The notes: a model not told the origin generated them from the letters alone. DNA of 64,000 nt from Macrostomum lignano (GCA_002269645.1 NIVC01002369.1:62001-126000); one strand, 5' to 3'. Shown: positions 8,102-20,360, numbered from the stretch's first letter. Numbers and translations are program-made.

Positions 8102-8338
8102 GCTGACTATGATGAGTTACGGCAAAAAGTAGATTTTGTGTTTTTAGAGAACATTAAAGGTCATTTTGAAGTCAGTTGTAAAATAAAATTATGAAAATTT
8201 GATACTCTATGTGAGAAGCATTTGTTGTCATTATTGACCAACAGTTCTGCCAATTCTTTTAACAACACGTCGCTTTTTGTGTCTTTTTTCAATTTTTAGC
8301 TTCTAGGTTAAAAGTTTGTGTTATTAGGTTAGGCAAAA

Positions 8339-8857: not shown

Positions 8858-9704
8858 ATGACCAACACAAGGGTATTCGCCGCGGCACGCGTACATGTTT
8901 GCCAGGATTTCCGACGCCGCGGTGCCCTCCCGCTGTCCACCTACATGCGGGTGTTTAAACGCGGTGACATTGTCGATATTAAAGGCAACGGCAGCATACA
9001 GAGAGGTATGCCGTATAAAACCTATCACGGCAAAACTGGCCGCGTGTACAATGTCACACCACACGCTGTCGGTGTGATTGTTAATAAGCAGGTAAGTTCG
9101 CGTAAAATTTATACAGAGTCCTGAATTTTAAAACTCCTGACCACTTGTAGTCACCCTGCAATGACTGTCAGTCCTGTCACTTGTGTAACTCACCTGTCAT
9201 TTTGTGTAACTCACCTGTCATTTTGAGTGACTCACCTGTCATTTGAGTGACTCACCTGTCATCTGAGTGACTCACCTGTCATTTGAGTGACACCTGTCAT
9301 CTGAGTGACACCTGTCATCTGAGTGACACCTGTCATCTGAGTGACACCTGTCATCTGAGTGACACCTGTCATCTGAGTGACTCACCTGTCATCTTAGTGA
9401 CTCACCTGTCATCTGAATGACACATAACGATCGCCTCACCACCCCACAAATTCACCAGGTGCGCAACCGCGTGATCCCCAAACGGATCAACGTCCGCATC
9501 GAGCACGTGAATCCCAGCAAGTGCCGACTGGACTTTCTTCGCCGCGTCAAAGAGAACGACATCAAGCGACGCGAGGCCAAAGCCGCTGGCAAGAAAATCT
9601 CCCTGAAGCGTCGGCCGCAGGGTCCGAGGCGCGCCACCATTGTGAAGACTAAGAAGAACAAGCCCCAGCTGCTGGAGCCGCTGCCCTACGAGCTGATCGC
9701 TTAG
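8858..9704 (+). CDS. RPL21: 60S ribosomal protein L21 (eL21); exons 8858-9091 and 9459-9704; residues ~5-17 frameshifted as assembled
   Basis: [54 protein letters not shown]|[17 protein letters not shown]...; donor CAG|GTAAGT, acceptor CACCAG|GTG, phase 0. Confidence 0.95.
9172..9416. repeat. 18-20 bp minisatellite (GAGTGA(CT)CACCTGTCATCT) in the RPL21 intron
   Basis: About 12 tandem copies seen directly. Confidence 0.9.
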
Positions 9705-9940
9705 GCATTAAAAGGGGCCTGCGTAATTCTATACAATATTACATCTAGACTCGAGTAATGGGCAAATGAATTTTCAATTCCGAGAATTATGAAATAAAAA
9801 ACACCGGCCTGTGGTTGTGTTGTTGTTGGACAACTAAAGCTCTATTGGATGAAAGAATTGCGTTAGTGTTGTGTTGCTTCTTTTGATGATAATATAATTA
9901 GCTTTTTCTATTGACTTTCGGCTTGTTAGGCTGCAATGTA

Positions 9941-10232
9941 CAGCCTCCTAGATCCTCAGTTGCTTGGCTATTGTCACTCCCTGATCCCCAGTTGCTGGGC
10001 CATCCAGCCTCCCAGATCCTCAGTTTCTGGGTCAGCCTCCCAGATCCCCAGTTGCTGGGCCAGCCTCCCAGATCCTCAGTTGTTGGGCCACCAGCCTCCC
10101 AGATCCTCAGTTATTGGGCTACCAGCCTCCCAGATCCCCACTTGCTGGGCCAGCCTCCCAGATCCCCAGTTGCTGGGCCAGCCTCCCAGATCCTCAGTTG
10201 CTGGGGCAGCCTCCCAGATCTCCAGTTGCTAG
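9941..10232. repeat. 31/34 bp minisatellite (CAGCCTCCCAGATCC(C/T)CAGTTGCTGGGC) upstream of the C14orf93-like gene
   Basis: About 9 tandem copies, ending just before an acceptor CACCCAG at 10247. Confidence 0.9.
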
Positions 10233-10305
10233 GCCATTGTCACCCAGTACTCAGACTCAACTGCGTGTTACCATCACCATTTATGCCAATCGGACAACCA
10301 ACACA

Positions 10306-13300
10306 ATGGCAACCGCTGTGCTACCTCCGCCGCCGTCAATGCCGGATCCGAACTCCTCTGGCGGCAGCTTCAGTCCGCTAACTCTGTTCGAATGCACCAT
10401 GACCAATGCCGGCATGCTGGTGGACAGTATGCCAGTTAGGGACCTGGTCTCGGCCCTGCGCATCATTGGCACTCTGCACACTCACGTTGTCAACATCATG
10501 GACCCTGGCGTGGCCAGCGTGTGCGACCTGGCCGATCAGTTCAACTCTCACCGGATTAAATGCCCCGCTGCCGCTGCCGAGACCGCCGCCGCCTCAGCTG
10601 CCGCCGCCGCCTCAGCTGCCGCCGCCGGCGAGGCCGAGCAGTCGCCAACTGCCAACTCCTCACTAGACGGAGGCGGCAACGCTAAGAAACGCTTGAAACT
10701 GGACGATAATTCTATGGCCTCATCGTTAAACGATCAGAATTCTACGGATAACAATCAGACACTTAATAACACCGCTTCAGCTGCTGCCAATGTCAAATCC
10801 GAATCTGTTGCCGAATCTGATGATGATTGCTGTATCCTTGACGACGGCGGCTTAGGCCTGATTGGTTCCGACTTTTACACCAGCATGCAGCAGCAGCAGC
10901 AGCAACATCAGCCTCGCAATCCGCAGATATCCTCAGCAGCTTCAGCATCTGCCGCTCCACCCTATGGCGGTCCCGTGCAAGATTCGGCAGCTATGAAGCA
11001 GATTTTACGCAACACCTACAAAGCTATGCGAGCTGGCGGTCCGCACCTATACGATTTTAATAGGCCGTGAGAGATTCATCTGTGAATTTTCTATTGGGTT
11101 TGTTAAATATGACAGATTATACTACTGAATTGAGAGTAGCTTAATACTGCATGTGCCTCACAATTTATTAGCTTGAGCTTAAAAATCAAGAAATTATACT
11201 ACTTAATTGATAGTAGTTTAATTGCACATGTACAGACTTATTAATGCTTCTCAGTAATCATTACTGCGGTTTAAAAATCTCAGAAGAGACTACACTACTT
11301 AACTGAAAGTAGTTTAATAGCACATGCACGGGGTTATTTATGCTTCTCTTGAATCATTTCTACAGGTTTTAAAGAATTAAAAGAGATAGTACTACTTACT
11401 GTAATAATAAGTAGTTTAATAGCACATACGCATAGTTTTTCATTCCTAATAATCGTTTTCTCCCTACCCTCACTGCCTTGTCTGCGCCAGCTGGAACGAT
11501 CCATTGAACCAGTCCGTGACTGAACGAATTGTCAGCCAAATTGTTGCCACAACGCCTGACATTTCCGTGTCTCCAGACGACTGGCGAAGTGAGTGCAGCT
11601 CCATTTTGAATGTGTATAAAAATTATTGTGTGATTTGTATATACGTAGATATTGAAACATTGGCGCGGTAGCATTTGCAGAGGTTTACAACCCCCAGTTA
11701 CTGTTTCATTATTATTAATAATAGTATTATTATTACTATCCTCATCCTCAAAATGAGAGCCTGATGCTCTCTTGACGCACTGATGAACCATTAATTGTAT
11801 GAATTAATTAACTCATTAAAGCATTAATTGGCCTGTTAACAATGCATAGTGCCGAGTATAAACAATAATAATTCCGCTGCAAATTCTAATGACATTTAAG
11901 GTCAGTCAGTCTCTATGCAGTTCTAAAGTCTATTCGCATTTTTGCAGCCCAAATGCTCAGACTATGGGAAGAAATGCATCCAAGGCGCGATGTACAGTTG
12001 AAAAAGCTTAGAGACAGGAAATATTGTCGAGTGAAAAGAGTAAGTTAAACAGTATGAGGAAATATATATTAATTTAGCCTTAAAAACTACTGCCGTGTGC
12101 AAATGATACTACTGCCCGCGTGAATTTAAAACTCAGCCAAAACAACATTAGTTTATGCTACCTTTTAACTCTACACTGAAACACTTGGACTGTAGAACTG
12201 TGCAGTCAGTTAATCGGGCAGCTAATGAGCAATCCGTCTGGCAGAAATCTTGATTTGAAACGTCAGACCATGAGAAAGTGCGGCAGATTGCGCACCGTAA
12301 GAGACTTTTGCTACTTACAGGGGTGGGGAACTCCGGCCCCCCGGGCCCTGTGACACTTAACTCTCTTTCTCTCGCCTCTTCTCTCTCGCCTCTCCTATCC
12401 CCTTTTCTCCTCTCTCTCTCTTATCTCTTGTGTCTCTAGTAAACAAGTTTGCCGACCCCTGTGCTACTAGAAGATTCTGTAGCCGTTTGTTATTCCTGCT
12501 TTCGCAATCCTCTGCGAACTGCATTATCGTTGCGCTAATAAAAAGAATCCGAAGCAATGCTTAGTAGGATGTGTTGGGCATGGTGATGTCTCTCTATCTG
12601 ATAAATTTGCAGGCAAATGTGCCGTAGCAATATTCACCCCGCTGCATAGGGAGACGGTTGTCAAGCACGAGGATAGGAAGCGGGTTAAACGAAAATATTC
12701 CCGAGTTTCCGCTGTAAGTTGACCTTGATTTCTAAGAAATACCAAATACCAAACCCTCGCCCTCACCGTTTCCTCTGCGAAAGTCGCCGACATTTGTATA
12801 CAAAATAAATAAAGCACAGCTAATTTTGTTTTAAACTGTCAATCCTATCTGTAGTTCGATGCAATTTGACATTGTTTGACAATTCCGCGTCAATGAAAAG
12901 CGACGCCGTGTTGAAATACGAGGCCAGAAAGCGGTCAATGCGTAAATATGCCAGAGTTAGCTCTGTAAGTAGTATATGCTTGGGGGAAATTGTCCGCTAA
13001 CACTTGAACAAGATCTCTGCAAATTAAAACCACAAGTGCCCGTTAACCACCAAAGTTTCACTGTGTACTTTTTATTGGGTTGGAATGCTTATTTTACTTT
13101 AAACACTTGCAACTAATGATGTCTAGGCGGTATAGACGAATTTGTGCGCACCGTTTTGGACGAAGAGATGCGCAATATTAAATCGCGTGGTTATAAACGG
13201 CGCTATAGCCGTATTACTGCGGTAAGTCTCATTAACCCGGGGTGTGTGTGTGTGTGTGTCTGCCTGTCTGTGTATGTGTCTGTCTGTCTGTCTGTCTGTC

Positions 13301-14976
13301 TTAGTGTCTGTCTGTCTATCTGCCTGTCTGCCTCTGTCTGTCTGTCTGTCTGTGTAGTGTCTGTCTGTCTGTGTGTCTGTCTGCCTGTCTGTCTGTCTGT
13401 CTGTGTATGTGTCTGTCTATCTTGTCTGTCTGTGTGTCTGTCTGTCTGTGTGTCTGTCTGTTTTTGTCTGTCTGTCTGTGTGTCTGTCTGTTTGCCTGTC
13501 TGTCTGTCTGTCTGTCTGTTTGCCTGTCTGCCTGTTTATCTGTCTGTCTGCCTGTCTATCTGTCTGTCTGTCTTAGTGCCTGTGTGTCTGTCTGTCTTAG
13601 TGTCTGTATGTCTGCCCGCCTGTCTGTTTGCTTGTCTGTCTGTCTATTGGCGTTAACCTATGTATTAAAAATCCAAGCCCTACCTAGGCTGTCTGTATTT
13701 AGAGTATATAGAAAACTGGGCAAATTAGAAATTCATTCAAGCCACTCAGAAGTCCTTTTCTCAACCTCTGCTAGTCGCTTTCCGTTGTGTATTTAACTTT
13801 TATTTGCTGGTTTTGAGTGTTTTTACTTACTATACTCCAATATAACTATGCGGTTCTGACTAGGACTACTGTACCATATAATGTTTGACGATGGCCGCTA
13901 CACTGGTAGCGAGGGCGGTTCTTGCACCAAAAATCGACTCAAATATTGGCGTCGTTATAGGCGAATCTCTACAGTAAGTTCCCTCTGCACTTGTCATATC
14001 GGCCTAAGCAACAGTTATTATGTTGCTTGCCCTTAGCAACAAAGACTTTATATGCTGAACAATAGTACACAAATACCTTGTATTGCATACAGCTTTAATT
14101 AAGGAGATATTGTTTACAAAGCAGCAAGCTGATCTGGCCGCCGCGCGGAAACGCATGCGCGTACGCTGCGTAAGTTCAATTGGTCAGAATTTATTGATCT
14201 CGGCTTTTTTACATCATATACCTACTCAACCCGCTACTGATAGTAATATAATTGGGTCTGAGCACTTGTTTTATAGTTTCTTTTTGTCTACAGATTGGAG
14301 CTTCATTAGAAACCTGCAAAAAAATCTAAACAAGCTGCTTGGACTTTTCTATAATTGATGTACGTCTAGGTCCCGGGTTCGAATCCGCGTCGCGACTTGC
14401 ACCAATTCGGCTCTTTAGGCCCTGCCTGACCACTAATGCATAGCAACAGAAATTTGTGGAGATGCTGGGGTGAACCGCAATAAATGGAGACCTATTCTTT
14501 CCTAATAGGAGGTCTTTGACAAACTTGACTCCCACGTCTAATTAAATCCTGACTAAATATTAGAAAGTGTATGTTCTCAGGAGTCACTGCTCACCACCTC
14601 CCCCCCCCATTACTCGCATCGCCATCCAATGCAGAAGCTGTCCCGTCGTCAGAAGGCATTCGAGCAAGTCCTGCCGTCGCTGAACCCGGACGATCTAGAC
14701 AAGTATCGAGTTGTGCTATCGCGCGATTTCACTTCGTCAGACGAGGAGACTGAGGACGAATCCACTGGCGAGACGGCCCTGCGAGTTCGAGAACTTGTTT
14801 GGGAGTCGCAGGAGGTCCGCCAGGTGAAGCAGCGGCTAGATCAGACGTTTATGAATCGATTTGCCACGCAGAAGCAGCGAGCCACGCTGCAGCGCTGCAT
14901 TCGAAACGCCGGCTGCACGAGTTCGAGGACGCCACCCGCTGAAGCGCCGGACTGGGCTCTGCGAGCTCCCGAGTGA
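10306..14976 (+). CDS. C14orf93-like protein: constant exons 10306-11066, 11491-11588, 14635-14976 plus one of seven alternative exons (425-439 aa)
   Basis: Exon 1 ends AGG CC|GTGAGA. Exon 2 (GCCAG|C...CGA A|GTGAGT) gives [24 protein letters not shown]. The last exon (GCAG|AAG) gives KLSRRQKAF...FTSSDEETE...[21 protein letters not shown]...SSRTPP...PDWAL, resembling the C14orf93-family C-terminal motif order. Family call is from recalled motifs, not a search. Confidence 0.8.
11118..11432. repeat. Diverged ~95 bp tandem repeat (3-4 copies) in intron 1 of the C14orf93-like gene
   Basis: Recurrent TACTTAA(T/C)TGA..GTAGTTTAAT(T/A)GCACAT. Confidence 0.55.
11666..11685 (+). promoter_or_regulatory. 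Candidate docking site (CGGTAGCATTTGCAGAGGTT) for competing RNA pairings
   Basis: Its reverse complement AACCTCTGCAAATGCTACCG is matched over 8-18 nt upstream of each of the seven alternative exons. Confidence 0.65.
11921..12039 (+). CDS. Alternative exon A: (I)[39 protein letters not shown]
   Basis: ATGCAG| ... AGA|GTAAGT, 119 nt, phase 1 to 0, open. A second in-phase acceptor lies at 11947. Confidence 0.8.
12196..12296 (+). CDS. Alternative exon B: (K)[33 protein letters not shown]
   Basis: CTGTAG| ... ACC|GTAAGA, 101 nt, phase 1 to 0, open; weak pyrimidine tract. Confidence 0.7.
12318..12461. mobile_element. Small hAT/Charlie-like MITE inside the exon cluster
   Basis: TIRs CAGGGGTGGGGAACT / AGTTTGCCGACCCCTG; near-8-bp duplication TGCTACT(T)A / TGCTACTA; CT-rich interior. 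Confidence 0.65.
12613..12713 (+). CDS. Alternative exon C: (S)[33 protein letters not shown]
   Basis: TTTGCAG| ... GCT|GTAAGT, 101 nt, phase 1 to 0, open. Confidence 0.8.
12855..12964 (+). CDS. Alternative exon D: (I)[36 protein letters not shown]
   Basis: TCTGTAG| ... TCT|GTAAGT, 110 nt, phase 1 to 0, open. Confidence 0.8.
13127..13221 (+). CDS. Alternative exon E: (S)[31 protein letters not shown]
   Basis: GTCTAG| ... GCG|GTAAGT, 95 nt, phase 1 to 0, open. Confidence 0.8.
13241..13645. repeat. (TG)n/(TCTG)n compound microsatellite between exons E and F
   Basis: Seen directly; explains the VCLS-type ORFs. Confidence 0.95.
13864..13973 (+). CDS. Alternative exon F: (R)[36 protein letters not shown]
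   Basis: CTGACTAG| ... ACA|GTAAGT, 110 nt, phase 1 to 0, open. Confidence 0.78.
14093..14169 (+). CDS. Alternative exon G: (T)[25 protein letters not shown]
   Basis: CATACAG| ... TGC|GTAAGT, 77 nt, phase 1 to 0, open; shortest and most diverged. Confidence 0.7.
14369..14560 (+). mobile_element. Possible 5'-truncated tRNA-derived SINE
   Basis: B-box GGTTCGAATCC at 14376-14386 preceded by GGTCCCG. No A-box or cloverleaf visible. Confidence 0.35.
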
Positions 14977-15340
14977 AAATTGCATTGACTTTTATTCAAG
15001 GGCAACTTAGCTAGAAGGCAGAGAGCATATGCTTTGTTTCTTAAAAAAGCTTTGAAGGCTATTTTCTACGCAGAAATCGCTCGATGCAAGCCGGCCTTCA
15101 AATATTTTCTAAGAAACCCAAAGTTTCCCATCCTCGGACTTCTGTGCTACTGACAGTAGTTTTTTAAGTCAGCTTTTGTCTAAGACGATTTCTTGTATTT
15201 AAACCAGTGGCATCAGATTTGCAATTTGTGTTACACGAAACTTAATACATTTGACTGGCAGTTTAAATACCTGGGTGTTGCATTTTGTTGTGTAAGCTGT
15301 CGGTGAACCAGTTACAATTATCTGTAGGATTTCTGCAATC

Positions 15341-15343
<3 letters not shown>

Positions 15344-15376
<33 letters not shown>
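15344..15376. repeat. (TA)n microsatellite
   Basis: Seen directly. Confidence 0.95.
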
Positions 15377-15379
<3 letters not shown>

Positions 15380-15829
15380 CATGTTTTAATTTATAGTAAT
15401 TCTCGTCTCGCATATATTCTATTCTCTTGTTTGCACCGATTTTGTTTATAAATAATCAAACAGGTTAACTTTTTTACATTTTCTTAACAAGTTGCTACGG
15501 CTACAGATTAATGTTAGTGTAATATAAACATGCAGCGCAAAGTGACTTGTCGAAGTTGTCGTTGTCAGCATAATCCATACGCTTGTGCATCCTGTTTAAT
15601 ACCTGCCATTATCCAGCTGTACTTCGTTGAACAAAGCTTGAATACGAATACAAGTTTAGTGTTATTCTTCAACAGCAGACCAGAAATTTACTCATGAAGG
15701 CACCGTGCTTATTGTCATGCTCGCTATTCAATTGTGTCCATTGATGTGTCTTCAGGTCTTTAGCTTTTTGTTATTGATGAAAATCGACAGATAGGTAGGT
15801 AGATAAATATGTGTGTAGGTAGGTAAATA

Positions 15830-15836
15830 TAGATAA

Positions 15837-15909
<73 letters not shown>

Positions 15910-15945
15910 AAGATATATAGATATTAGATGGATAGATAGATAGAT
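15830..15945. repeat. (GATA)n microsatellite
   Basis: Seen directly. Confidence 0.95.
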
Positions 15946-16439
15946 ACATTCATAGGTAGATAGATGCGTACGTAGATAGACTATTTAGAATCTCTATAGT
16001 AATAACAGTATCGCAATATTGCAAGGAGTTGGGCGAATGTGCACTGAAATCTCTTAGCAGCCACTTTGAATATTTGTCCCAGATTCAATAGCAGATTTTT
16101 GCAGACAGTACGGGCTCTCAATAGTGAAAAGCCGAGCCCAGTTCGAGTCGCACGTGCTCTGAAAGTAGAAAATTCTCGAAATTGGGTCAGCGCGTCTGAA
16201 TTAGTGTGGGGGAGTCAAGATTTGAGACTTCAAAAGTCAGTCGCAGACATGCAGGTACCCGTATTTTAAACATTTTTGAAAGAGAGAAGTGAAATTTCCA
16301 CGCTGAGGGAACGCAAGCACGGATATGAATTCGAGTCGCTATTTTCAAGCATTCAGAATTTAACGTTTTAACTTTATCTATTCAGCAGCAGTTCTTTTGG
16401 TTGGAATTGGATAATCAGATCTTTCCGAAGCTCCATAAA

Positions 16440-17260
16440 TCGTCTAGAATTCTTGCTTGTTGCCTTCACATCCACAAGCTCGAAGCTTCACATATCGTCT
16501 AGAAGTCTTGCTTGTTGCCTTCACATTCACAAGCTCAAAGCTTCACAAATCGTCTAGAAGTCTTGCTTGTTGCCTTCACATTCACAAGCTCAAAGCTTCA
16601 CAAAACGTCTAGAAGTCTTGCTTGTTGCCTTCACATTCACAAGCTCAAAGCTTCACAAAACGTCTAGAAGTCTTGCTTGTTGCCTTCCCATTCACAAGCT
16701 CGAAGCTTCACAAATCGTCTAGAAGTCTTGCTTGTTTCCTTCACATTCACAAGCTCAAAGCTTCACAAATCGTCTAGAAGTCTTGCTTGTTGCCTTCACA
16801 TCCACAAGCTCGAAGCTTCACATATCGTCTAGAAGTCTTGCTTGTTGCCTTCACATCCACAAGCTCGAAGCTTCACATATCGTCTAGAAGTCTTGCTTGT
16901 TGCCTTCACATTCACAAGCTCAAAGCTTCACAAAACGTCTAGAAGTCTTGCTTGTTGCCTTCACATTCACAAGCTCAAAGCTTCACATATCGTCTAGAAT
17001 TCTTGCTTGTTGCCTTCACATCCACAAGCTCGAAGCTTCACAAAACGTCTAGAAGTCTTGCTTGTTGCCTTCCCATTCACAAGCTCGAAGCTTCACAAAT
17101 CGTCTAGAAGTCTTGCTTGTTGCCTTCCCATTCACAAGCTCGAAGCTTCACAAATCGTCTAGAAGTCTTGCTTGTTGCCTTCCCATTCACAAGCTCGAAG
17201 CTTCACAAATCGTCTAGAAGTCTTGCTTGTTGCCTTCACATTCACAAGCTCGAAGCTTAA
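16440..17260. repeat. 55 bp tandem repeat, ~15 copies (CGTCTAGAAGTCTTGCTTGTTGCCTTCACATTCACAAGCTCGAAGCTTCACAAAT)
   Basis: Near-identical units with no spacers. Confidence 0.95.
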
Positions 17261-19879
17261 TAATCGTACAGAATTCTTTTTTGATTAGATAAGTTCCATA
17301 ATTCTGGAGAAGTTATGCTTGTTGCTTTCACAAGCTCTGCTTTCAATTCACACTACCAGTTCTTTCTATAATCACTTCACTAGCTGACGACTAAAACCAG
17401 TTCGACCAATGTCAACTTTCGAACTAGGAAAAGCTGTCCTTGCTATTCTCTGGAATTCCCCTATTGCTTTTAACAGTCGTGACTTTTACGTGTATATCTG
17501 CAGTAGGTGCGGGTTGTCTCCATGTCTAGCCTCGGGGGTTGAATACTATTATTATATTATATAAGCCAAGACGTAATTCTTTGCTGTAGTTTCTCGTGTA
17601 TTTCAACCGACACAAGAAGCCCATTAACCTGTTATATTGGCTATAAAATTCTCCCACTGAGTGCCTCCACGGACACAGCCATATTACACGTGGAAGTCAA
17701 AAGTTAAATTACACCCATGTACGAGTAGATTTTATTTAATTTTCGCGTATTACCCAACTTCCGTTTTTAGGGAACTCCCGTCAGTCGCTATAGGAGTCCT
17801 TTGTGAACGTGCAACAGGCGTATAACACTGTAGCTACTGTTAATAGGGCCGATAAGTCTTTGTTCTTGTCACGCGCTTGAATTCGGATTCCCCGCTGGTC
17901 AGTGGTTCGCTCCGGAGGGTTGGGTTAAGTGTCGTGATGCAATCAGCATTAATTAGAGCTGTGTCCTCCACGCGTGTGTCTGCTTAGGTCCGGAGTTATC
18001 GTTATGATAATGGATGGCTGGTTGCAGGTATGAAGTTTTAACTGCAGGATTTCCGCTTCTCCTTTTAATTCTTGAGTCATCGCGCGCTGAGTTGTCTCGA
18101 AGAACTTGGAGCTAGTGGCCGCGGCCCGCACGCGAGCACATCCGAGTGTTCGGGAACAGAGCTAACAGATGGGATAATTTCATAGCTGGATTGGACTGCA
18201 GATTCTGATAGGCAGATACAAGCGGAAGATTGAGGAAGCTGAGTCTGGCTTGCCTGCATCATCATCAACCCCGTGCTGTTTCCGCTGACCAGTTCGCTAC
18301 ATTGAACAGTGTCGCCCGTCTGCGCGCCCCAGAGCACCACTTCTAACACTTAATTATATATCGAACCGCTATATTCTGGCTGCAGTTATGCAACTGGGAG
18401 AATGCTCAAAATATGAGGCTGGTGTAAAGACTATATAATCTCGTATAGAAAGAAGACCCAAAAGAAATTTGTTGCTTTTTTGAACGCCCGGCTGAGCAGA
18501 GAAACCGCGAGTTCCCCGCTGTTTGAGCGCAGGTGAAACGTAACAACAGACATCTTTTAGTATCGGCAATAATTCTCTTGAGTCGACACCTAAATCTACA
18601 AGCTTCTCCAAGGTCCCGAAGATAAGAGATTTCTGCTTTATAGTAGGCAACACAGAATTGCAGTCTGAGATAGATAAAAATGCATATATTTTAAGACAAA
18701 CTGATAAAAGAGACTTACAAAACCTAATTTTGAGCAAACAGATGCTTTGTGTAGACGCGCAAAGAAATAAGATCCAAGATAGATCATAAAATCTGTTATC
18801 AAAACGCATGTAAAGTCTCTGACTACAATCCAGATTCGTCTAGAATATGATTTTGTTCAGTGTCCGACCATCAGTTTTATCCTGTCTGCATGGAACCATG
18901 GCGGTTTCCGTGAAATTTGAAGCAACCGCCATTCCATGACGGCACGCGCCTCTCGTTTCCTGAGATTTGACCCTTCCCGCCCCCTGCCAGACTTCAGAAG
19001 CGGCTACCGTTGTTTGTTAAGGATTCCATGCCGTGTCTCCGTCCAGTCGCCTCTTGGATTTATAGTGACTCTGCCGTCAATGTGTCCCTACAAAGTTAGC
19101 AAACAGTAAGCAGAGATAGGAGGCGCGAGAAGGGAGTTGAGAACCGGTGTTTGCTCAACCACACGCTCCCTGGATGGACTCGTGTCTCATAAGACTGAGC
19201 TAGTCTCTAAGCGGAGTCAGCCTCGCTCGTTCGGTCTCTATGCAACGTCGGCACTTAAACACACAACCGCAGTCAGAAACTTTATCATCAGAGCTGTTTT
19301 CCAACTGATTTTCAATATATCCAACAGCCATCTGCATGCGCCAGCGTCCTCTGAAGGCATGCGCCTAAACAGAACAACATACATCCGTCATCATTCGTTC
19401 GCCCTTGTTTTCATTTCTCAATATTCGAAGTTTTTCGAGGTCAGATAGATGGGGGGGGAAGTAGAGGTGACCCCTGCAGTGATCCAGCTGGACAAACTTT
19501 GCGGCCGGGAGGCGGGCGATGCAAAAGTGTCCGGAAATGAGACGCTTCGAACTTAGGGAAATATTTTCTTCAGGTGCCCGGTCTGCGGTTACCAAAATAT
19601 TATTTGTTTATTAGGAATGAAATTCCACGATTTCTCTGCGCATGTCTACATTTAAAAAGCGGCGTGATGCCTGAAACTTCAATAGCAATTGACACTTGAC
19701 ATTGTGGACAAAGGAGCCAGATGGTCAAGGCTGGTAAGGGTGAGAAGGGGGAGAGAGGAGGAATGAGACAGGGGAAGAATGGCAGAGGTGAGTGAAGACT
19801 GTGATGTGACTGCAGAAGAGATGGGAGAGGTGAGAGTGAGGGAGAGAAAGTGAGATATAGGGAAAGTGGATATGAGAGG

Positions 19880-20360
19880 AATAGAGTTGAGATCGGAGGG
19901 AGAGAGTGGAGATGGGAGTGAGAGAGATGGGAGAGAGGAGATGGGAAGGAGAGGAGATTGGACGGAGTGATGGGAGAGTGGGGATGGGAGAGTGGAGATG
20001 GAAGGGAGAGTGGGGATGGGAGGGAGAGTGGAGATGGGAGAGTGGGGATGGGAGAGTGGAGATGGGAGAGTGGGGATGGGAGAGTGGGGATGGGAGAGTG
20101 GGGATGGGAGAGTGGAGATGGGAGAGTGGGGAAGGGAGAGTGGGGATGGGAGAGTGGGGATGGGAGAGTGGAGATGGGAGAGTGGGGAAGGGAGAGTGGG
20201 GATGGGAGGGAGAGTGGAGATGGGAGGGAGAGTGGGGATGGGAGGGAGAGTGGAGATGGGAGGGAGAGTGGGGATGGGAGGGAGAGTGGAAATGGGAGGG
20301 AGAGAGGAGATGGGAGGGAGAGAGTTGAGATTGGAAGGAGAGAAGAGATGAGAGGAGATG
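19880..20360. repeat. Purine-rich minisatellite (GGGAGAGTGG(G/A)GAT)n
   Basis: Seen directly; G-rich strand. Confidence 0.9.

Follow-up and report, generated by a model that had tools for sequence, protein, structure and literature searches.

In silico support for a docking/selector pairing system at a cluster of seven tandem exons in the flatworm Macrostomum lignano

How might a gene that carries seven tandem exons between two constitutive ones arrive at a transcript in which a single one of them is used? This question is raised by a gene on the + strand of a 64-kb stretch of the genome of Macrostomum lignano (GCA_002269645.1 NIVC01002369.1:62001-126000; locus L003), which we refer to as the window and to whose full length all coordinates given here relate. 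A short sequence in the first intron of the exon cluster, the putative docking site, is complementary to putative selector sequences positioned in front of the variable exons, and the original prediction had interpreted this arrangement as a competition between RNA pairings of the type found at exon 6 of Dscam, in a host that does not belong to the arthropods. The protein encoded by the gene is 97% identical to M. lignano models, and positions 9001-20000 of the window agree at 100% with locus L003 on contig NIVC01002369.1. M. lignano is indeed a free-living flatworm, and our computational follow-up supports the Dscam exon 6-like reading in silico. We consider it quite probable that a docking/selector system governs the choice of one of the seven (effectively six) tandem exons of this gene.

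The gene starts with exon 1 (10306-11066), whose translation ends DFNRP, which ends in phase 2 and which matches the M. lignano gene models P0001, P0003 and P0004 at 97-100%. It is followed by the constitutive exon c2 (11491-11588; WNDPLNQSV...SPDDWR; donor GAA/gtgagt), which ends in phase 1, and the gene is closed by the last exon c3 (14635-14976; ending APE and the stop codon), which is entered in phase 0. Between c2 and c3 lie the variable exons A (11948-12039; 92 nucleotides [nt]), B (12196-12296; 101 nt), C (12613-12713; 101 nt), D (12855-12964; 110 nt), E (13127-13221; 95 nt), F (13864-13973; 110 nt) and G (14093-14169; 77 nt), all of them on the + strand and separated by introns that are very short, four of them measuring 119-162 nt. 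Each of the seven exons (77-110 nt) is 3n+2 nt long and is flanked by an AG acceptor and a GTAAG donor. The peptides that they encode have a common basic C-terminal end (R/K-R-Y-x-R-V/I-S/T) and are otherwise barely alignable. Given the phases of c2 and c3, the 3n+2 length entails that only one, four or seven variable exons keep the reading frame; phase analysis shows that the frame is shifted when zero, two or three are included, and translation of each single-variable-exon isoform yields a frame that is open through to the stop codon. Exon E is the sole variable exon, placed between c2 and c3, in the gene models P0001 and P0004, while in P0002 and P0005, c2 is joined to exon B, beyond which the models continue into the intron. 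As judged from exon phase and these four gene models, the anatomy of the cluster is that of mutually exclusive exons.

The docking site (11666-11685; + strand) starts 77 nt past the c2 donor; its core 12-mer, CATTTGCAGAGG, is found at 11672-11683, 83 nt into the first intron, and the pairing footprints span 11660-11689. We assessed it by an unbiased scan of both strands of the window, in which each 10-, 12- and 14-mer received a score for its summed ungapped complementarity (a G-U pair counting half) to the 150-nt stretches that precede the seven exons. Among ~128,000 positions, TTTGCAGAGG (11674) and CATTTGCAGAGG (11672) came first, with z values of 4.7 and 4.65, respectively. The remaining high scores were trivial reverse complements of the selectors themselves, and the docking site formed the sole peak of at least 3 standard deviations on the + strand between 11000 and 15000.

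No second docking site emerged when the scoring was repeated for the 100 nt that follow each variable exon. The intron between exon G and c3 (14170-14634; 465 nt) contains neither a selector nor an element complementary to these stretches, and the best docking duplex that can be formed there reaches -16.9 kcal/mol. We rejected a docking site downstream of the cluster of the type known from Dscam exons 4 and 9, since the scan was devoid of any second peak. The docking core (CATTTGCAG/AGG, 11672-11683) itself resembles a 3' splice site.

The seven selectors, all on the + strand, were compared directly with AACCTCTGCAAATGCTACCG, and the coordinates, reads and match counts given for the eight docking and selector sequences in the original prediction proved correct. 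Selector A (CCGCTGCAAATTCTA; 11874-11888) matches at 13 of 15 positions and lies 59 nt upstream of exon A; at -15.1 kcal/mol, its duplex is the weakest of the seven. Selector B (TGCAAATGATAC; 12098-12109, extended 12091-12119) matches at 11 of 12 positions, 86 nt upstream of exon B, and selector C (CCTCTGCGAA; 12509-12518, extended 12508-12539) has nine matches plus one G-U pair, 94 nt upstream of exon C. Thirteen matches and three G-U pairs over 18 positions characterize selector D (CCTCTGCGAAAGTCGCCG; 12772-12789), which is found 65 nt upstream of exon D. In selector E (AGATCTCTGCAAAT; 13011-13024, extended 13010-13041; 102 nt upstream of exon E), 14 contiguous pairs including two G-U pairs are present, with 10 of 10 matches over 13015-13024. 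Selector F (AACCTCTGC; 13763-13771, extended 13762-13789; 92 nt upstream of exon F) and selector G (CCTCTGCA; 13982-13989, extended 13974-14005; 103 nt upstream of exon G) match in full over nine and eight positions, respectively; selector G starts 9 nt past the exon F donor, which lies within the extended duplex of this selector. A selector is thus positioned upstream of every exon, as had been predicted, at a distance that we measured as 59-103 nt; the predicted range of 33-104 nt was slightly too wide at its low end.

When scored ungapped against the docking core, all seven selectors reach 9.5-10.5 of 12. In a k-mer enumeration that made no reference to the docking site, no motif was shared more widely among the seven upstream regions than CCTCTGCA / CTCTGCAAAT. 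With at most two mismatches, CTCTGCAAAT is present in each of them, and the 8-mer coverage was matched by 3 of 100 shuffles. The rest of each upstream region holds no shared motif above the level of shuffled sequences.

RNAduplex calculations with a 32-nt docking window gave energies of -24.8 to -29.7 kcal/mol for selectors B-G (-29.4 kcal/mol for C, -29.7 kcal/mol for G). Relative to dinucleotide-shuffled introns, the z values were -2.3 (B), -2.2 (C), -1.9 (D), -2.9 (E) and -3.2 (G). The summed duplex energy had a z of -4.5, and none of 500 shuffles was as low. Together with the first rank in the scan of the window, this answers the demand of the original prediction that the matches be better than background. 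With a 20-nt docking window, all seven RNAduplex footprints contain TTTGCAGAGG, and every selector overlaps TGCAGAGG, so the mutual overlap on one core that had been claimed is borne out, and hence only one duplex is possible per transcript. The minimum free energy (MFE) and centroid folds of the 1.5-kb segment 11589-13088 pair 11675-11686 with 13011-13022, i.e., with selector E, and enclose exons A-D; the positions were counted by hand on the MFE dot-bracket string, to which a long outer stem in the centroid fold corresponds. Judged by location and core match, six selectors are solid and A is the weakest.

Two homeologous copies of the locus, L001 (NIVC01000420.1) and L002 (NIVC01001317.1), are ~93-97% identical, and we aligned both with the window and evaluated the ungapped columns of this three-way alignment. 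The docking site is identical in all three copies, and selectors B, C, D and F are unchanged. In the extended docking and selector elements, 2 of 214 columns (0.9%) vary, as compared with 73 of 1450 columns (5.0%) of the other intron sequence (Fisher's test, one-sided, p 0.002) and 11 of 686 exon columns. Among the homeologs, the docking and selector elements are therefore conserved like exons, while the neighbouring intron changes five times faster. Both changes within the elements affect unpaired positions: G11876 in selector A, an already mismatched position, is A in both other copies, and A13026 belongs to an internal loop beside selector E. The most variable stretch of the alignment, differing at 21% of its columns, is a (TGTC)n array in the intron that leads from exon E to exon F; selector F, positioned just downstream of the array, is among those already noted as unchanged. 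This microsatellite (~100 units; 13245-13645) fills most of that 642-nt intron.

The variable exons do not all fare equally well in the three copies. None of the 101 columns of exon C varies, while 4 of the 92 columns of exon A do, an intron-like rate. Exon A is intact in the window copy and is interrupted by stop codons that arose through different lesions in the other two (ATG>TAG at window 11974-5 in L001; CAA>TAA at 11950 in L002). Exon A is probably decaying in an otherwise live cluster, which would leave effectively six exons, and this decay fits the weakness of selector A. Copy L002 alone carries a 3.67-kb insertion (11628-15297; inserted at window ~11920), which separates selector A from exon A. 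Inverted repeats at its termini (CAGTGTTCCCAC...GTGGGAACACTG) and a target duplication of 8 bp (ATGCAGTT) mark it as a DNA transposon, possibly a hAT-like one.

The gene belongs to a family. A full HMMER scan yielded 128 relatives, and all those that carry names are M. lignano proteins. With respect to orthologues in other species, protein searches and the HMMER scan named only M. lignano proteins, in an index so sparse that a query with c3 only missed even P0001. We analyzed the paralogous genes at L008, the upstream gene of L007 and two L004 genes, each with at least three variable exons, plus L010, with four. In L008 (P0013), c2 is followed by five variable exons of 77 nt. Its candidate docking site, GGAAACGTCGCAAGTT at 8284, is the top site on the + strand of the 20-kb locus (14-mers; z 5.0) and lies 77 nt past the donor, an offset equal to that of the focal gene; selectors match it at 11.5 of 12 positions, 61-82 nt upstream of v2, v3 and v4; v5 is matched with a bulge, and v1 is not matched. 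The L007 upstream gene has four exons; AGGGCGTTGCAGGGCC at 532 ranks first among 14,800 positions (z 5.3), and v2-v4 are preceded by selectors at a distance of 61-73 nt. L010 (P0021) likewise has four exons. The first rank among its 20,900 positions goes to CCTTGCATTTGGTG (11412; z 5.9), which is separated from the donor by 108 nt, and the selectors are found 81-95 nt upstream of v1, v3 and v4. Between L010 and its homeolog L011, the docking site and the three shorter selector footprints are identical, and the long footprint of v4 differs at one base outside the core.

Hence, at four loci (the focal gene, L008, the L007 upstream gene and L010), the top-ranked + strand site falls into the first intron, for which the chance is ~7e-8, and 16 of 16 strong matches across the genes are positioned 61-101 nt upstream of an exon (p ~1e-7 against uniform position). 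Each docking site pairs best with the upstream regions of its own gene, a preference that still holds under equal optimisation for the focal gene, L008 and the L007 upstream gene. An alignment of the docking sites and selectors of these three genes had 81% of its cells paired, and 10 of 14 pairs had changed on both sides; its covariation score of 0.518, against 0.231 in shuffles with none of 500 as high, is to be read as support and not as a probability. The docking sites of L008, the L007 upstream gene and L010 differ from that of the focal gene and have matching selectors. To judge from these sequences, the paralogs keep the docking/selector layout while the paired sequences have changed together, and the conservation and compensation that the original prediction had named as a check are thus found at the level of homeologs and paralogs.

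The remaining members of the family contributed less. The downstream (P0006) and upstream genes of L004, each with three variable exons, have a candidate docking site and selectors 76-97 nt upstream of the exons, and we did not count them. L005 (P0008) and L007 (P0012) have a single variable exon and no cluster and are uninformative, as is L009 (P0016), a 2.27-kb gene for 494 amino acids with little room for a cluster; L006 (P0007) has one annotated variable exon and one further candidate. Family members are often arranged in tandem, two or three per 20-kb locus (L004, L007, L008, L010, L011). Many of their database gene models stop short within or just past the variable exon (P0002, P0003, P0005, P0021), and it is probably the exon clusters that mislead annotation here.

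Two of the docking sites lie 75-79 nt from the donor, and a T(T/C)GCA core is shared among the paralogs. Could the whole family, then, operate in this way? We regard it as an evenly balanced proposition that a flatworm-specific family, with at least 15 M. lignano paralogs that are often in tandem and at least four with clusters, uses inherited, co-evolving docking/selector pairs as private exon "addresses", the docking site predating the divergence of the paralogs and then drifting jointly with its selectors. If true, M. lignano would provide the first example of a multi-selector docking system in a non-arthropod, along with a natural compensatory series.

In the mechanism that we propose, the pairing of a given selector with the docking site would loop out the variable exons upstream of the selected one and would bring the acceptor of that exon effectively to ~140-180 nt from the c2 donor. 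As this is the size of the ordinary short introns of the gene, the selected exon would be spliced to c2. Products with zero or two variable exons would meet early stop codons and be removed, so that the 3n+2 length would act as an added frame check. For the unselected downstream exons, a general repressor as in Dscam exon 6 would be the obvious guess. The duplex of selector G may, in addition, mask the donor of exon F that it covers. In four of five clusters, the exon with the weakest or no selector is the first one (A in the focal gene, v1 in L008, in the L007 upstream gene and in the L004 upstream gene). This pattern suggests that pairing mainly serves the distal exons, and it would agree with a system that falls back on the proximal exon in the absence of pairing.

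Several observations weigh against our interpretation. The cores are short, 8-14 bp, and much shorter than the elements of Dscam exon 6 are said to be, and with the 32-nt docking window, the duplexes of selectors A (z 0.07) and F (z +1.0) are no better than those of shuffled introns. Two of the three copies have a disrupted exon A. L008 v1, L007 upstream v1 and L010 v2 are without a convincing selector, and the candidates of the L004 clusters are no better than equally optimised cross-gene controls. The predicted mutual exclusivity of the exons is deduced from exon phase and from four gene models that form two 90%-identity clusters. Divergence among the homeologs amounts to only ~3-7%, and their conservation could be mimicked by gene conversion between the copies. 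The covariation evidence comes from homeologs and paralogs of one species, not from orthologues, and the covariation alignment was fitted by the best complement per upstream region and comprises three docking lineages only.

Among the explanations that compete with a docking/selector choice, the one that comes closest to it retains the pairing as functional and lets it do no more than bridge the c2 donor to distal acceptors, exclusivity then resulting from the 3n+2 frame together with nonsense-mediated decay, or from protein repressors. The weak or missing selectors of first exons, the 3n+2 length of every variable exon and the lack of a second docking site in the last intron for the downstream splice all speak for this proposal, which we hold to be possible in a tentative way. 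It differs from the docking/selector reading only in emphasis, however; the shared core makes the pairing one-at-a-time by nature, and the overlap of selector G with the donor region of exon F hints at direct masking. That the motif CCTCTGCAAAT is instead the site of a splicing-regulator protein, with an incidental complement in the first intron, would agree with its pyrimidine-rich composition and its fixed position 59-103 nt from the acceptors, where an intronic enhancer or silencer might reside. Its complement, however, outranks every other one of the 128,000 positions and falls exactly where a docking site is expected. Moreover, the motifs of the paralogs differ and yet complement the first-intron site of their own gene, which is not what a protein site in common would produce. 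We judge this explanation to be very improbable.

The complementarity might also be a neutral relic, one arm of an ancestral intron hairpin that was copied with each exon duplication and persists, undecayed and functionless, in the scenario of Ivanov and Pervouchine. The exons are tandem duplicates, and the model in PMC6071210 predicts exactly such a by-product. Against this stand the exon peptides, which barely align, the upstream regions, whose remainder is without a motif above shuffles, the exon-like conservation of the elements next to an intron that changes five times faster, and a complementarity that has been kept through sequence turnover in the paralogs. Moreover, the sole decaying exon (A) is the one with the weakest selector. 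All this leads us to give a mere relic little credence. Chance complementarity, picked out by eye in AT-rich introns, could draw on the shortness of the individual cores and on selectors A and F, which stay within the shuffle range with the long docking window; it is rejected by the scans, given the first rank among ~128,000 positions, the recurrence at three further loci (joint ~7e-8) and the clustering in position (p ~1e-7), and we consider it next to negligible. Two more specific proposals were set aside as well. Selectors A and C could pair with the TTTGCAG acceptors of their own exons (11937-11947, 12603-12612); as a general explanation, this was rejected, since by eye it works for A and C and not for the other five. 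An origin of the complementarity from transposon ends was rejected because TTGCAGAGG occurs only three times in 64 kb and the likeness among the selectors ends at ~18 nt.

What the exon choice would alter in the protein can be gauged from an AlphaFold2 model built on the family alignment, which is confident for residues 223-428. The variable segment is predicted to make up the initial two thirds of a long helix (279-330), and it is this helix that ends in basic residues. Pfam gave no hit on any of the seven isoform segments at E values up to 10, a profile search of PDB sequences gave no match, and a Foldseek search of the PDB gave no significant match, the best BEN entry, NACC1 (8yzs), appearing at rank 29 with an E value of 9.6. 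The designation BEN domain protein, which is the UniRef name of model P0005, was thus not reproduced by Pfam, the PDB profile search or Foldseek. The gene would encode a flatworm-specific protein in which a swapped basic helix could set binding specificity. The analysis in this way flags an unannotated protein family whose present gene models are truncated or represent a single isoform.

Some features of the surrounding DNA deserve mention. In the last intron, 14293-14358 is AG-bounded, has the right phase and would encode 21 residues followed by a stop codon, and we considered it as a poison exon or alternative terminal exon; it is probably not an exon, since its acceptor AG is AA in L001. 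The nearby stretch 14366-14400 resembles the 3' half of a tRNA (GGTTCGAATCC...GCACCA), and large indels are present here among the copies; a scan of this intron with ARAGORN called no tRNA, and the stretch may be a fragment of a tRNA-derived short interspersed element. The intron between exon 1 and c2 contains a 96-nt tandem repeat (11198-11427; ~2.3 copies) whose units hold small hairpins of the type ACTACTTAACTnAAAGTAGT, and similar hairpins (CTCCTACTGACAGTAGGA) occur in introns of the L004 paralog. Just upstream of the gene, in all three homeologous loci (9000-9720 in the window), lies the gene for ribosomal protein L21 (RpL21), which holds a tandem array of 18-20-nt units (9173-9421; ~12 copies). 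A 28-nt array of ~10 copies (9941-10236) occupies part of the stretch that leads from RpL21 to the start codon of the gene with the exon cluster.

How does this locus relate to established systems? The docking/selector system of Dscam1 exon 6 was described by Graveley (2005) and May et al. (2011), and is reviewed in PMC11802352 and PMC7430681. As in Dscam1 exon 6, the M. lignano docking site lies just past the upstream constitutive exon, a selector precedes each variable exon and none follows the last, the selectors compete for one core, and the variable exons are tandem duplicates. Unlike Dscam, an immunoglobulin (Ig)-superfamily receptor of Arthropoda, the gene studied here is unrelated, belongs to a member of the Platyhelminthes and would encode a flatworm-specific protein, and it has 7 variable exons where Dscam1 exon 6 has 48. 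The M. lignano cores extend to 8-14 bp, or up to ~24 bp with loops, while the Dscam docking site and selectors are reportedly much longer. Further differences are the very short introns of the flatworm gene and its 3n+2 exons, through which the frame would also enforce single inclusion. For the hrp36-type repressor, the locus control region and the balancer structures of Dscam1, no M. lignano equivalent is known, and nothing in the sequence points to such a repressor.

Multi-exon docking/selector control has so far been established only in arthropod genes. In several arthropod clusters other than Dscam1 exon 6, the docking site is positioned downstream of the cluster, or the pairing is bidirectional; the M. 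lignano locus differs from these, as our scan for downstream docking found none. Competing pairings have been described for Dscam1 exons 4 and 9, 14-3-3 xi, Mhc, srp and PGRP-LC (Yang et al., 2011; PMC4691838; PMC6191721), and like the M. lignano cluster, such other arthropod clusters are small (2-12 exons) and use intronic docking/selector pairings. Outside the arthropods, two intronic elements of mammalian ATE1 compete for one partner and thereby render exons 7a and 7b mutually exclusive (PMC7797038), and competing pairing in mammalian dynamin 1 (Suyama, 2013) is cited in PMC11802352 and PMC3923563. Competing pairing as such is hence already on record for non-arthropods, which qualifies our interpretation. 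In contrast to ATE1 and dynamin 1, which involve two exons and two competitors over distances of kilobases to 30 kb, it would represent a multi-selector array that recurs across a gene family.

Mutually exclusive exons are known in flatworms, e.g., in coq-2 and Mhc. In the literature that we searched, no paper links mutually exclusive exons of flatworms to docking/selector pairing, no paper deals with this M. lignano gene family, and the non-arthropod examples of competing pairing are the two-exon mammalian cases. For fly and human annotations, Ivanov and Pervouchine (2018; PMC6071210) proposed that several selectors sharing one docking site arise when an exon is duplicated in tandem along with one arm of an intron stem. 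The constant distance between selector and exon in M. lignano fits such an origin by duplication, and relative to that study, the locus provides a new, independent data point with covariation at the level of paralogs. An independent flatworm array of 6-7 selectors that is repeated in paralogs would show that the mechanism arises readily where exons are duplicated with a stem arm. Transgenesis exists for M. lignano, and the 3-kb cluster with its short introns offers a compact test system in which the paralogs supply natural compensatory variants. Taken together, comparison of the sequences supports the view that the M. lignano system is an independently evolved instance of a known mechanism, notable for its phylum, its multi-selector array and the co-varying repeats of that array within the gene family.

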